Sequence record: NC_042098.1
DNA: 64,000 bases
Reading direction: 5' to 3' (one strand)
Below the pieces are notes generated by a model. The model was not told where the DNA came from and did not search any database. It saw only the letters and a program-made list of their open reading frames with translations. Positions 8,586-23,583 of this stretch are shown one piece after another. Within the stretch, counting starts at the first letter, position 1. Every line of letters starts with the position of its first letter. The position numbers and the translations under genes are program-made.

Positions 8586-9422
8586 ATGCACTTACTTGAT
8601 AGTCCTGACGTTTGGATGCCCATACCTGGATTCTCACGTTACGAGATCAATGAGGTAGGTGTAGTCAGGAATTGGAATAAACAAATCATTAGCCAATCTA
8701 AATGGGGTGATTACTTAAAGGTTGTTATTGCGGCCGATGACGGCGAACAGCGGATGATCATGGTCCATGTTGCGCTATGCCTCGCCTTCCATGGCAAGCG
8801 TCCCGATCTAGGTCCTAATGTTCTAGTAGTAACAGTAAACCATAAAGACGGTAATAAAGAAAACAATACCAAATCTAATGTCGAGTGGGTGTCTAACTCA
8901 GACAACGTGTTACATGCCTATAAGACTCGTCTTAACAAGACATCTCAGCATGTGTTGATCGATGATGAGTTAACCGGCGAGCGATTCTCGGTACATTCTT
9001 ACGAAGAGCTTATGCGCTGGGTCGGTAGTCCTCATTTGAAAGGCCGAATCTTTTGTAGCATATACCGAGACAAACTTTATCAAGATAGATATCGAATCAC
9101 CGAATTACCTGGTTATGAACCAGGGTCAGGTGCGGCGGCAGCTATTCAGATTAAAGTGTTCGATATTGCGGCAAAGCATAATTTACGGAAGAGCGCATAT
9201 GACGGCTATGTATTTGGCAGCGTCGATGAAGCTTCCGGAATGTTAAGTTTGAGTGTGTCGCGTATAAAAACGATATTAAGGCTGGGTAACCTGATTTTAT
9301 TCAACGGTTACCTTTTCATGAAAGCTAACGATATGCGAACTATACCTGGTTTCACTAAAGAACAAGTGGAAAAGTCACTTCGCATATTTAAAGCAAAACA
9401 ACGACGTAAGAACATTTACTAA
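8586..9422 (+). mobile_element. free-standing NUMOD4-HNH homing endonuclease
   Basis: WMPIPGFSRYEIN (NUMOD4-like) and VH..VNHKDGNKENN..NVEWVS..N (HNH); AT-richer than its neighbours; directly upstream of nrdB. Confidence 0.88.
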
Positions 9423-9435
9423 AGGTAAACACAGC

Positions 9436-10572
9436 ATGCAGTACAGTACTTTCAACCAGAATAAAGTTGACTATCTCCAAGAACCAATGTTCTTTGGTGA
9501 AGCCGTGTCTGTTTCTCGCTACGACCAACAGCGTTATGAAATCTTTGAAAAATTGATCGAGAAACAACACAGTTTCTTCTGGCGTGAGATTGAGGTCGAT
9601 GTGTCTAAGGATCGTATTGATTTCAATACAAAGCTCACCGACAGTGAAAAACACATCTTCATCAGCAATTTGAAATACCAAACCCTGCTGGACTCGATTC
9701 AGGGTCGCAGTCCTAACGTGGCATTCCTGCCGATCTGTTCTATCCCGGAACTCGAAACCTGGATGGAAACCTGGTCGTTCTCTGAAACGATCCACTCGCG
9801 CTCATACACCCACATCATCCGTAATGTGTTCAATGAACCAGGGGTGGTGTTTGATGATATCGTCACTAACGAACACATCAAAGCCCGCGCAGCATCAGCA
9901 ACCAAATACTACGATGAGTTGATTGAACTCACGTCTTACTGGAATCTGTTGGGTGAAGGCACTCACGTGGTCAACGGTAAGAAAGTCGTGGTTAGTCTTC
10001 GTGCACTGAAACGCCTGCTATTTCTCTGTATGGTGTCTGTTAACGCATTAGAAGCTGTTCGTTTCTATGTGTCGTTCGCCTGTTCATTTGCCTTTGCTGA
10101 ACGTGAGTTGATGGAAGGCAATGCCAAGATCATTAAACTGATCGCCCGCGATGAAGCCCTGCACCTGACCGGCACTCAGTACATGATCAATCTCTTGAAG
10201 TCTGGCGAAGATGATGCTGAGATGGCGGAGATCGTTAAAGAGTGCTGGAAGGAAGCCTGGGACATTTTTGTCGAAGTTGCCGAACAAGAGAAAGATTGGG
10301 CAGCTTACTTGTTCCAGGACGGCGGAATGATTGGTCTGACGGAGAAGGTGATCGTTCAATATATTGAATATATCACTAACGTCCGCATGCGGGCTATCGG
10401 AATGGATATTCCATTCCCTAACGCCACCAGTAATCCAATCCCATGGATCAACTCCTGGCTGGTCTCTGACAACGTACAGGTGGCTCCACAGGAAACAGAA
10501 ATTACATCCTATCTGGTCGGTCAGATCGACTCGAAAGTGGACGCCAACGATTTCGACGATTTCCAACTGTAA
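9436..10572 (+). CDS. nrdB: ribonucleotide reductase class Ia beta subunit
   Basis: E. coli-like motifs [38 protein letters not shown] and VAPQETEI. Confidence 0.97.
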
Positions 10573-18362: not shown

Positions 18363-19091
18363 GTGATGGATATTGATAATAAAAAGATCTTGGGGTTGGT
18401 GTTGAATGACTTCGTGGACATGTACATGCTACAGCTCAACAACAAGAACCGTGATGTCTGCATCAACGAGTTAAACTCGGGGCTGTGTGGTGTAGCGGCC
18501 ATGTGCGTTGGGAATGTCATGCGTGAGCGCTACGGAGCAACTGACATCGACTGGGAGTCACACTGTTTGCACATGTGGCTGGTATTGGATGGCAAACGCT
18601 ACGACACCCTTTATCCGGAAGGTTATGACGTACCGGTGGTAGATGCCTGGTTACTGAAAGAGCAGAAATACAACAGCCATGTCATGGCCGGGGAAAGTGT
18701 CATCGATATTGAAGATAACAGTGGCTATGTGGCGGGTGGTTGGTGGGATTGTCTTTATCTCATCAAAGGCTGGTATGAACGCTACGGTATGGCGCCTCCT
18801 GCTTACGTTAAACGCATGATGACCAATCTACGCGGTAATCATCTCCATCGCCGAGAGCGTCGTGCAGCGCGTCGTTACCAGCTCGTGTTGAAAGCCCCAC
18901 TTCCCTCTTTTACCGATGAAGTGCGCACCAACACCGTATTGCCGATGACCCACTATTGGCACGGTGAGTTCGAAGGTAGCCAAGAGCGTGTTCTGGCGCG
19001 TAAGCCGGGCATGCCGTCCGTGAAGACCTATAAAAGCTTATTGAAGTATTACCGTGAGAAAGGTGTGCCTGTCACGCAGTACTTCTGTTAA
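18363..19091 (+). CDS. putative Cys-His-Asp (papain/transglutaminase-like) protein
   Basis: NSGLCG...HMWL...YDT motif order, shared with 26525..27064. Confidence 0.55.
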   Translation: MMDIDNKKILGLVLNDFVDMYMLQLNNKNRDVCINELNSGLCGVAAMCVGNVMRERYGATDIDWESHCLHMWLVLDGKRYDTLYPEGYDVPVVDAWLLKEQKYNSHVMAGESVIDIEDNSGYVAGGWWDCLYLIKGWYERYGMAPPAYVKRMMTNLRGNHLHRRERRAARRYQLVLKAPLPSFTDEVRTNTVLPMTHYWHGEFEGSQERVLARKPGMPSVKTYKSLLKYYREKGVPVTQYFC

Positions 19092-19240
19092 TCAATCATA
19101 TACGTAAAGGGGTCTGGCGAAAGCCATATCCCTTTTGGTTATGCTGTCTTTTTTTTGGTTAAGAAATACTAGCCTTCTCCATTATATGCAATTTACACGA
19201 TACACTTTTCTATTTATTACATCAGCAAGAGAGATAAGAC

Positions 19241-19384
19241 ATGAGCGCACCTGAAGAATTTGATATGGACGGCCTGGAAGCACTGGATCTGGAAGGCGCT
19301 GAGAAAGCGGCAGAAGAGAAAGCAGCCGGCGGTGGCGAAGCCCTGTCTGATGGCGAAGCAGATTGCGAAGGTTGCAAGATCTAA
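19241..19384 (+). CDS. 47-aa acidic protein ending DCEGCKI (not in the ORF track)
   Basis: MSAPEEFDMDGLEALDLEGAEKAAEEKAAGGGEALSDGEADCEGCKI; purine-rich RBS (aagagag); coding-like codon usage; resembles an NrdA C-terminal tail. Confidence 0.75.
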   Translation: MSAPEEFDMDGLEALDLEGAEKAAEEKAAGGGEALSDGEADCEGCKI

Positions 19385-19410: not shown

Positions 19411-19737
19411 ATGGGATCAGTTAACCGAGGAAACATCATGAACATCTATCTTGTCCAACGCAAATCAGAGCCCCGTTACACACCGGATTCATTTATCGCT
19501 GTTGCAGCATCGACCGAAGAGGTGCTGATGATTCACCCTAGCTACTTTCAGGGAAAGAACACGCCTGTGAAGTTCGACGAGGCAATGGCCGCCCTCTGGG
19601 CGAATGAGTTATCCGATAGTCCAATGGATCATCAATGGGTTACCGATAAGAACGAGCTCGAGGTCACCTATCTGGGTCAGGCTGCGATGGAGTTCACCGG
19701 TCCCACGATCATTGAGATGTGGTACGGGTACGCCTGA
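19411..19737 (+). CDS. hypothetical protein (likely start ATG 19438)
   Basis: gagga RBS before MNIYLV; terminator follows. Confidence 0.65.
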   Translation: MGSVNRGNIMNIYLVQRKSEPRYTPDSFIAVAASTEEVLMIHPSYFQGKNTPVKFDEAMAALWANELSDSPMDHQWVTDKNELEVTYLGQAAMEFTGPTIIEMWYGYA

Positions 19738-19814: not shown

Positions 19815-20426
19815 ATGTTTAAACGTTTCATGTTCTATCTGTTCAGTAAGTTATTTGACCATAAAGGGGAGTACACCATGTCCGAAGCAGTGAAAGATCA
19901 GCAAAGCAATGACGTTAATGCAACCAACGATGTTGAGGTGCAGCCAACACCTGCTGAGACCTCTGCACCGGAACTGGCATCTAACGATGTGGTTGCCGCA
20001 CCGGAAGCCGCAGGCGACGCCCGTCCTGAAGTCCAGGATACGGTAGAGTCGACGCCAGTGGTGATTGAACCGGCTGCAGTTGCTGAACCATCCGCACCTG
20101 CCGTGGCACCTGCTCCTGTTGTTGTACCTGCGGCTGAGCCAGCTCCCGCACCTGTAGCACCGACCACCCCGACCGACAGCGACAAGACTGAAGGCGAGCC
20201 CGATACCAATCGCTTCGACCATCTGGCCAGTACCCTGAAGAGTTTACTTCAGGTAGCCGGTCATGAGCTCGACGAAGCATTTGACGATGCAGTACCTTTG
20301 GCAAAACAGATCGCTTCCAGTGACGAAGAGTTCGGTGACAAGCTGAAAGACATCCTTGTGGTTGTCGGCCGTGAATACGGTGAAGCTTTCCATCATTTCT
20401 TCAGCTATGCGAAGAAGCACATCTAA
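19815..20426 (+). CDS. Pro/Ala-rich protein with a duplicated C-terminal helical module
   Basis: two in-frame starts, each with an RBS (19815 and 19878); PAPA-rich linker. Confidence 0.7.
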   Translation: MFKRFMFYLFSKLFDHKGEYTMSEAVKDQQSNDVNATNDVEVQPTPAETSAPELASNDVVAAPEAAGDARPEVQDTVESTPVVIEPAAVAEPSAPAVAPAPVVVPAAEPAPAPVAPTTPTDSDKTEGEPDTNRFDHLASTLKSLLQVAGHELDEAFDDAVPLAKQIASSDEEFGDKLKDILVVVGREYGEAFHHFFSYAKKHI

Positions 20427-23004: not shown

Positions 23005-23583
23005 ATGGCCAAGATGACTTTCTATTACGCTTCGATGAACGCCGGAAAATCCACCGCATGCATCCAAGCAGGTTACAACTATTTAGAACGCGGACTGCGG
23101 GCCTTGATGATCAAGCCTGAAGTTGATAACCGCGATGACACAGATAAAGTCAGCTCGCGTGTCGGTCTCAGTGCGAAGGCGGTTGTTTTTGACAGTGAGG
23201 TTAATCTAACCGAACTGGTATTACACCAGATGAAGACTTCCAAGGTCTCGGTGGTATTGGTTGATGAAGCGCAGTTCCTGACACCGGATCAAGTCAAAGA
23301 GCTCAGTGACATCGCCGACTTCGAAGACATCCCCGTGGTCTGCTATGGTTTGCGTACCGATTTCCAAGGTGAACTCTTTCCTGGGTCTGCAGCCTTAATG
23401 GCTCGCTCAGATCGCCTTAAAGAACTGATCGGTGTTTGCCATTGTGGCAAGACAGCTCACTTCGTACTGCGTCGTGATGACAAAGGTCAGGTGGTGAAAG
23501 AAGGCGAGCAAATCCTGATTGGCGGGAATGACCGCTATGAAGCAGTGTGTCGCAAGCACCATCGCGTGGCCATGCTGAGTTAA
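23005..23583 (+). CDS. tdk: thymidine kinase
   Basis: MNAGKS, VDEAQFL, YGLRTDF.G.LF.GS, IGGN.RY and the CRKH zinc site. Confidence 0.96.
   Translation: MAKMTFYYASMNAGKSTACIQAGYNYLERGLRALMIKPEVDNRDDTDKVSSRVGLSAKAVVFDSEVNLTELVLHQMKTSKVSVVLVDEAQFLTPDQVKELSDIADFEDIPVVCYGLRTDFQGELFPGSAALMARSDRLKELIGVCHCGKTAHFVLRRDDKGQVVKEGEQILIGGNDRYEAVCRKHHRVAMLS

Follow-up and report, generated by a model that had tools for sequence, protein, structure and literature searches.

A conserved jumbo-phage protein with a C-terminus resembling the redox tail of host ribonucleotide reductase

Why would a phage encode, as a small protein of its own, a peptide that ends much like the redox-active tail of its host's ribonucleotide reductase (RNR)? 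This question is raised by gp107, a 47-amino-acid (aa) protein encoded within a 64,000-nucleotide stretch of sequence record NC_042098.1 (the window, whose coordinates are used throughout). In class I RNRs, the disordered C-terminus bears a cysteine pair that receives electrons from thioredoxin or glutaredoxin and passes them on to the active-site disulfide (PMC9669993). PMC4078304 and PMC5704485 likewise describe the tail as disordered and its cysteines as substrates of thioredoxin or glutaredoxin. We find that gp107 is a genuine conserved gene. We tentatively favor, at somewhat less than an even chance, the reading that its product mimics the tail of NrdA, the host α subunit, and enters the thiol relay from thioredoxin or glutaredoxin to NrdA. 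The case for this reading is drawn from a 10-residue motif and its context. The gene and its two parts are as follows.

19241..19384 (stop included), + strand: gp107 (DESERTFOX_107 / AUG86214.1, "hypothetical protein"); open reading frame (ORF), GenBank coding sequence (CDS), and PHROG match
19241..19333, + strand: acidic helical part of gp107, residues 1-31, up to the GGG hinge; AlphaFold2 and alignments
19334..19381, + strand: disordered tail of gp107, residues 32-47, GEALSDGEADCEGCKI, with the Cys pair C42/C45 and terminal CKI; AlphaFold2 and hhalign

The region around gp107 is 100% identical to that of Erwinia phage vB_EamM_Desertfox (MG655268.1, 272,458 bp, genus Agricanvirus), with base 1 of the window corresponding to genome base 62,001. 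The same region was found at 84.6-99.3% identity in 16 more records of the phage group to which Desertfox belongs. The ORF runs from an ATG to a TAA, and its translation, MSAPEEFDMDGLEALDLEGAEKAAEEKAAGGGEALSDGEADCEGCKI, contains 15 Asp/Glu and 3 Lys residues. An initial annotation, made from the letters of the window, had reported this ORF with its DGEADCEGCKI terminus and AT-rich upstream region, and the sequence and translation agree. That annotation also called the ORF unannotated, which is true of the gene track it worked from but not of public records, where the ORF is a GenBank CDS and belongs to phrog_10239.

Using tblastn, the conservation check that had been proposed, we detected gp107 in 17 of 17 related phage records, including AH06 at 74.5%. 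Among 5.8 billion proteins searched, nine clusters were 70-98% identical to gp107, the contigs encoding them reaching 288 kb, and a pattern scan of IMG/VR added further relatives at 47-61% identity. When 1.84 billion representatives were searched with a family profile, 17 proteins matched, 15 of them at their extreme C-terminus. The family occurs in several jumbo-phage genera infecting Erwinia, Dickeya, and Yersinia, and the known hosts are all Enterobacterales. Comparison of Desertfox with 87-89%-identical homologues by the Nei-Gojobori method gave dN/dS ratios of 0.17-0.25, indicating purifying selection. Gp107 matches the phrog_10239 profile over its full length (E = 3.1e-29, 102 bits; residues 1-47 align with profile positions 1-47), as do the longer relatives with their tails. 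PHROGs v4 gives this family no functional annotation, and the likeness to NrdA is not recorded there. Searches of Pfam and NCBIfam with gp107 returned no match, including none to thioredoxin, glutaredoxin, or NrdH; at 47 aa the protein is too short for a thioredoxin fold, and its C-x-x-C lies in a disordered end. Gp107 is neither NrdA nor a redoxin.

Alignments of close homologues, distant relatives, and profile-search members define a module of ~45 residues, which comprises an acidic motif ([DE][DE]-F-[DN]-h-x-x-L-[DE]-x-h-[DE]), a short helix of the form AE..A..K (AEK..AEEK in gp107), a GGGE hinge, and a tail of 10-16 residues. The hinge is kept in nearly all members. F7 and L12 are nearly invariant in distant relatives, L15/D16 and A20/E21 are invariant among close homologues, and EADCEGCKI is invariant down to 47% overall identity. 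The C-terminus is invariant across at least five phage genera at 47-60% overall identity. The tail occurs in two main forms: C-x2-C (EADCEGCKI in Desertfox, Rivsvirus, and Wellingtonvirus), which is the spacing of most Erwinia-phage members, and C-x4-C (SN[EV]C[ED][GS]G[GA]C[KSM]I). One member has C-x3-C. The conserved residues of the family include two Cys and no His. When modeled using AlphaFold2 with the family alignment, gp107 is predicted to form helices at residues 9-14 and 17-31 (pLDDT 66-79), followed by an unstructured tail at residues 32-47 (pLDDT ~50, no secondary structure).

In Desertfox, the module makes up nearly the whole protein and can fairly be called free-standing, as the initial annotation had it. 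In other phages, however, it forms the C-terminus of larger proteins (127-296 aa). The N-terminal parts of these longer members matched no Pfam family, no Desertfox protein, and no PDB fold at a significant level; for one of them (P0018), AlphaFold2 gave a confident β-β-α-α-β-β domain in one of five models, with a best PDB fold match of E = 0.04. Another, P0015 of Erwinia phage pEa_SNUABM_5 (L097:5507-6133), is 208 aa long with the module at its end. The middle of P0015 is an acidic stretch of ~70 residues made up mostly of Asp/Glu runs, an extreme tether between a small helical N-terminal domain and the dithiol tail.

The tail of the module was then compared with that of NrdA. Escherichia coli NrdA, whose sequence was fetched via the neighboring nrdB, ends in QDDLVPSIQDDGCESGACKI, with the terminus DDGCESGACKI. 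NrdA proteins of Enterobacterales end in ...DD[GD]CESGACKI, and their last eight residues are CESGACKI in 80 of 80 species, including an Erwinia sp. and six Pantoea. The tails of the phage family are listed below.

Yersinia phage fHe-Yen9-02: CESGACSI
Dickeya phages JA11/JA33: CESGACMI
P0025: CEGGACKI
Remaining C-x4-C members: CEGGGCKI / CDGGGCKI / CESGGCMI
Desertfox type: CEGCKI

When five C-x4-C members were aligned with eleven NrdA C-termini using hhalign, the last 10 columns matched end to end (P = 4.9e-6, 70% identity). On an end-anchored position-specific scoring matrix (PSSM) built only from the last eight residues of seven family members, the NrdA end scored 28.0 bits, compared with 25.5-30.7 bits for the members themselves. 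None of 5 million random tails reached the NrdA score, so fewer than 1e-5 such matches would be expected by chance per host proteome (~4,000 proteins). BLASTP of gp107 against E. coli NrdA also paired the two C-termini as its best match, although weakly (E = 0.48). The Ser shared by the two ends is encoded by codons of different classes (TCA vs AGC), and codon usage gives no sign of recent capture from nrdA. In our reading, the likeness probably reflects selection for the same terminal peptide, by mimicry or convergence, rather than a gene fragment.

If gp107 addresses RNR, the RNR genes of the phage become relevant. The window contains one such gene, together with a thymidine kinase gene:

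9436..10572, + strand: nrdB (gp89), an orphan gene for an enterobacterial-type class Ia RNR β subunit; PF00268, E = 1.9e-48
23005..23583, + strand: thymidine kinase (gp113), 3.6 kb downstream of gp107; annotation

The nrdB gene lies 8.7 kb upstream of gp107 with no nrdA beside it, in line with the initial annotation (which put it at about 9 kb), and the absence extends to the whole 272-kb genome: none is annotated, and tblastn with E. coli NrdA returned only noise. A phage nrdA missing its tail, or lacking the C-terminal Cys pair, had been suggested as something to look for elsewhere in the genome; by annotation and tblastn, Desertfox has no such gene. The proposal that the tail was split off as a shuttle for a phage NrdA is not supported, as there is no phage NrdA, NrdA of the host type keeps its tail, and the codons carry no sign of capture. 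The other option raised in the initial annotation, a mimic or competitor acting on host NrdA, thioredoxin, or glutaredoxin, is the candidate reading that we prefer. A 716-aa gene adjoining nrdB in phage AH04 was also considered as a possible NrdA, and it is not NrdA.

Desertfox NrdB is 74% identical to E. coli NrdB at the amino acid level, and this includes the conserved α-binding C-terminal tail. Its product has been detected by mass spectrometry (MS) in lysate of Deimos-Minion (PMC6690015). Because Desertfox pairs a host-type NrdB with no NrdA of its own, host NrdA is already the working partner of the phage, and the RNR operating during Desertfox infection should consist of host α and phage (or host) β. 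Since there is no phage NrdA, any target of gp107 in this pathway would be host NrdA or its reductants. Judged from sequence, nrdB itself is context for gp107, a candidate partner at most. Co-occurrence of RNR genes with the family was checked in two complete genomes. Yersinia phage fHe-Yen9-02, a different kind of jumbo phage, has a family member ending in CESGACSI and neither nrdA nor nrdB, so the family is not tied to phage nrdB.

Enterobacterial-type NrdB (68-72% identity) was also seen in many jumbo phages, among them pEt-SU, OBP, N1M2, Kc263, PCH45, AH04, Sureiya, Yubaba, and Survivor, and none of these NrdB-bearing jumbo phages is among the phage NrdA matches above 56% identity. The 52-kb phiEcoM-GJ1 group has the same pattern of nrdB without NrdA. 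Phages with only nrdB were described as rare in 2013 (2 of 128; PMC3653736); orphan nrdB may be much commoner than that.

The wider gene content of Desertfox points to investment in deoxynucleotide (dNTP) supply, with genes for NrdB, thymidylate synthase, dihydrofolate reductase, thymidine kinase, and thymidylate kinase; such investment fits a helper role for gp107. Thymidine kinase genes are likewise found 1.1 kb and ~6 kb from the family members at loci L191 and L012, respectively, and dCMP deaminase and thymidylate synthase genes flank the family gene in pEa_SNUABM_5 and the Dickeya phages. The gene neighbors differ between genera, yet family genes tend to sit among nucleotide-metabolism genes, in three lineages (thymidine kinase in Agricanvirus-like phages, dCMP deaminase and thymidylate synthase in Rivsvirus and the Dickeya phages); the contigs of P0014 and P0023 are too short for informative gene context. 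A crude regular-expression scan of Desertfox for redoxin motifs resembling CGPC or CPYC gave no match within a plausible gene, so the reductants would be those of the host.

Taken together, these observations suggest the following mechanism. Gp107 would be expressed as a small cytoplasmic protein in which an acidic "handle" of helices carries a flexible dithiol tail at the C-terminus, imitating the last 8-10 residues of host class Ia NrdA. The Cys pair of the host tail is reduced by thioredoxin or glutaredoxin, swings into the active site, and re-reduces the catalytic disulfide at each turnover. Given the shared terminal motif, we propose that the same partners recognize the phage tail, so that electrons might pass from thioredoxin or glutaredoxin to the tail dithiol and on to the NrdA active site. 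The conserved acidic helices could dock gp107 on its target. Gp107 would then most likely be an extra electron shuttle acting in trans to support dNTP synthesis by host NrdA, which in Desertfox may be paired with the phage's own NrdB. Which partners gp107 binds, that it is redox-active, and that it helps rather than blocks the enzyme are all inferred from sequence.

Several observations weigh against this mechanism. Host NrdA keeps its own tail, and the benefit of a second tail supplied in trans is not evident. For a class II enzyme, a separately expressed C-terminal domain failed to restore activity in trans in the one attempt reported (PMC5704485). The gp107 peptide is absent from the proteins detected by MS in the lysates from RAY and from Deimos-Minion (PMC6690015). 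The PSSM score sinks as upstream residues are added (24, 18, and 11 bits at 10, 13, and 16 residues), which limits the likeness to the terminal 8-10 residues. HMMER searches of PDB sequences with gp107, P0019, or the family profile did not return NrdA at E <= 10. The N-terminal parts fused to the module are of at least four unrelated kinds, so the tail could be a general tag instead of an RNR device. Finally, the NrdA-tail likeness that the initial annotation read from the Desertfox peptide is borne out by hhalign and the PSSM for the C-x4-C members, and by AlphaFold2 as regards a disordered tail, but it is weak for the Desertfox peptide alone: the Desertfox-type C-x2-C group aligned to NrdA with P = 0.011 and a two-residue gap. 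With C-x2-C set against C-x4-C in the host, the mimicry, as judged from these alignments, is inexact in Desertfox.

The limited extent of the match allows a function outside RNR, which we regard as unlikely, though a serious contender. Here, the module would be a general redox or metal-binding tag that came to look like NrdA by converging on a short, Gly-rich dithiol loop; it might form a regulatory disulfide or, when dimerized, hold Zn or an Fe-S cluster, with the acidic helices binding another, basic partner. The similarity covers just 8-10 residues of Cys, Gly, Ser, Ala, and Glu, the Cys spacing varies among C-x2-C, C-x3-C, and C-x4-C, the N-terminal domains joined to the module are of four or more unrelated kinds, and gene neighbors are not conserved between genera. 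HMMER does not link the family to NrdA, and the two Ser codon classes speak against common descent with nrdA. However, two conserved Cys without a His could not by their number make up a mononuclear Zn site within one monomer, and the match includes non-Cys positions in exact C-terminal register (C-E-[SG]-G-[AG]-C-x-I-stop), beyond what chance predicts for a host proteome. The identified hosts all carry exactly this NrdA end, and the tendency of family genes to lie among nucleotide-metabolism genes also speaks for RNR. The same motif evidence would serve equally well for a decoy or inhibitor that competes with the host NrdA tail at the active site or docking surface, or soaks up reduced thioredoxin or glutaredoxin, and so throttles or re-routes RNR and thiol redox. 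Gp107 is small, acidic, and largely disordered, as are known RNR inhibitors (Hug1, PMC4245953); a family member is present in a phage without any RNR genes; and limiting RNR is not an absurd strategy, since dNTP levels raised by a phage RNR can trigger host defenses (bioRxiv 10.64898/2026.10.27.754916). The acidic F/L-containing helix could in principle rival the acidic C-terminal tail of NrdB for NrdA, but that likeness consists of a few acidic and hydrophobic positions read by eye. Blocking RNR also runs contrary to the dNTP-supply genes of Desertfox, and we consider a decoy quite unlikely.

Two further explanations fare worse. The module could be the precursor of a RiPP (a peptide made on ribosomes and modified after translation), with an acidic leader carrying an F-[DN]-L-[DE] box, a double-glycine cleavage site at GGG, and a Cys-containing core modified by a maturase. 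Some members do contain DEFNLDDLD or DDFNLDALD, the FNLD box is a documented leader motif (PMC3930743, PMC7296275), GGG is invariant ahead of the tail in most members, and a radical-SAM gene lies 1.5 kb downstream of the fHe-Yen9-02 member. That radical-SAM protein, however, falls below every NCBIfam cut-off and has no homologue in Desertfox or at other member loci, and no LanB/LanC/LanM, peptidase, or exporter is annotated in Desertfox or listed near members. Moreover, the putative core has no constant Ser/Thr, with S, T, G, A, or D at that position; it is strongly acidic and does not differ between genera; and in some members a folded protein of 100-250 aa takes the place of the "leader". 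A RiPP precursor is therefore improbable. Gp107 could also be a relic or a chance ORF, either a decayed 3′ fragment of a captured nrdA or a spurious intergenic ORF. It is short, below usual gene-calling cut-offs, has no Pfam or NCBIfam match, and was not detected by lysate MS. In contrast, it is under purifying selection, its C-terminus is held constant across genera, and it has its own terminator-bounded spacer and Shine-Dalgarno-like site. An origin as an nrdA relic was rejected because codon usage is unlike that of nrdA and there is no NrdA similarity upstream of the last 10 residues. We regard a relic or chance ORF as the most improbable of the explanations and in practice dismiss it.

How far does the favored reading, a mimic of the host NrdA tail acting in trans, resemble known systems? 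The closest comparison is the tail of Enterobacterales NrdA itself. Both are disordered, acidic, extreme C-termini with a Cys pair, the C-x4-C members share C-E-[SG]-G-[AG]-C-x-I-stop with NrdA, and the gp107 tail would share the cytoplasm of the same cells. Unlike that tail, gp107 is not part of an NrdA polypeptide and has no RNR barrel or ATP-cone (Pfam), NrdA has no counterpart of its helical handle and GGGE hinge, its Cys spacing in Desertfox is C-x2-C, nothing is alike above the last 10 residues, and the codons hold no hint of common descent. In our reading, gp107 may work like the NrdA tail, yet it does not belong to that class because it is not part of an NrdA. A precedent for separation is NrdJb of the split class II RNR (NrdJa+NrdJb) of Pseudomonas aeruginosa, in which the C-terminal Cys-rich redox domain resides on a separate gene (PMC5704485). 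As proposed for gp107, an RNR C-terminal electron-transfer element is a separate polypeptide in this system. NrdJb, however, folds as a Cys-rich domain of the zinc-finger type (four Zn-ligand Cys and a Cys pair) and is encoded together with its own catalytic subunit, which lacks a tail, whereas gp107 has two Cys and no zinc motif, its genome encodes no tail-less α, and the host α keeps its tail.

The yeast proteins Sml1 and Hug1 are comparable in that they are small, largely disordered, and act on RNR subunits. Sml1 interferes with the regeneration of Rnr1 by the C-terminal C-x2-C tail of Rnr1. Hug1 binds Rnr2 (PMC4245953). Both are cellular inhibitors without a Cys-pair tail, whereas gp107 carries the tail motif itself, and no hit named as either protein came up when databases were searched with gp107. 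Leaders of class I lanthipeptides share with the family an acidic N-terminal stretch that includes F-[DN]-L-[DE], with Gly-Gly and an end containing Cys after it. In contrast to these peptides, the family lacks maturase, protease, and transporter genes and a conserved core Ser/Thr, and its module is often attached to large folded proteins.

A broader version of the mimic reading, which we find doubtful, is that jumbo phages of Enterobacterales use a portable "NrdA-tail" module of acidic docking helix and dithiol tail to commandeer, in trans, the reductive half-cycle of class Ia RNR in the host. Desertfox infection would then assemble a chimera of host α, phage β, and phage tail, the redox step would be retuned by having C-x2-C in place of C-x4-C, and the fusions would deliver their domains to NrdA or thioredoxin.

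No class I RNR can complete a turnover unless its active site is re-reduced via the C-terminal tail. In the literature searched, we found neither a class Ia tail as a separate polypeptide nor a phage mimic of one. If the mimic reading is true, gp107 would represent a new viral route to control host dNTP synthesis, would help to explain why many jumbo phages carry only nrdB, and would offer a natural tool for dissecting how the active site, and thioredoxin or glutaredoxin, recognize the tail. A function would also be assigned to the uncharacterized phrog_10239 of Agricanvirus and other jumbo phages of plant and animal pathogens; RAY, of the Agricanvirus group, is a characterized nucleus-forming phage (PMC10299810). 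If the likeness is instead convergence, the family would still be a conserved, unexplained dithiol-tail module.

The immediate surroundings of gp107 contain the following features.

19097..19156, + strand: hairpin and U8 run after gp106, intrinsic-terminator-like, parting gp107 from the upstream gene; strand folding
19157..19240, + strand: AT-rich leader; candidate promoter TATTTATTAC (19211-19220) and GAGAG resembling a Shine-Dalgarno site (19229-19233); sequence
19411..19737, + strand: gp108, 108 aa, phrog_11706, unknown function; ORF, PHROG, annotation

The AT-rich spacer between gp106 and gp107 is 149 bp long (19092-19240). The hairpin at its start (-22 kcal/mol, z = -3.47; 0 of 200 shuffles equal its fold) and the eight U that follow look like a terminator for gp106. 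A simple terminator scan missed this hairpin because the U-run lies ~6 nt past the outer stem. The GAGAG is 7 nt upstream of the gp107 ATG. A possible promoter at TATTTATTAC is a candidate suggested by its sequence; this 10-mer is not significantly enriched within the window (6 matches vs 2.6 expected), and a scan of the upstream region for σ70-like promoters found none. Because Agricanvirus genomes annotate their own multisubunit RNA-polymerase genes, the σ70 scan may not apply. As gp108 starts 27 nt past the gp107 stop with no terminator in between, the two genes are probably co-transcribed; their synteny is seen in close relatives only.

The DNA upstream of gp107 (18363-19240) is a variable spot, with gp107 and the sequence downstream conserved. 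The gene for gp106 (18363-19091; 242 aa, phrog_6870) is absent or replaced in Bosolaphorus, Ea35-70, and Deimos-Minion. The aligned 2.2-kb region matches in two pieces where extra DNA is present, ~600 bp in RAY, Simmy50, and Mortimer and ~120 bp in Special G. A second copy of the N-terminal part of gp106, 33-36% identical, occurs a few kb downstream in RAY (L009:16744-16986, ~6.7 kb downstream of the gp107-type gene) and in two related contigs, suggesting a paralogous domain of unknown function. Shortly downstream of gp108, gp109 (19815-20426) encodes a 203-aa, Ala/Pro/Glu-rich, low-complexity protein, and the three long antisense ORFs over it look like composition artifacts. The radical-SAM protein of fHe-Yen9-02 (L188:33784-35178) is 464 aa long and has Fer4_12 and Radical_SAM domains.

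Variation is also apparent at nrdB and the gene that precedes it:

8586..9422, + strand: HNH endonuclease (gp88), directly upstream of nrdB; PF13392, E = 5.6e-6; annotation

Desertfox, Deimos-Minion, Rebecca, and MadMel share NrdB at 99-100% identity, but the figure is only 77-79% for RAY, Ea35-70, Simmy50, Special G, Mortimer, Bosolaphorus, and AH06, genomes that around gp107 are ~97-99% alike, except for AH06 (84.6%). The order of HNH and nrdB has been reported to be flipped in Deimos-Minion, Desertfox, and MadMel (Sharma et al. 2019). The pattern at nrdB and HNH (8586-10572) looks like allele replacement linked to a homing endonuclease.

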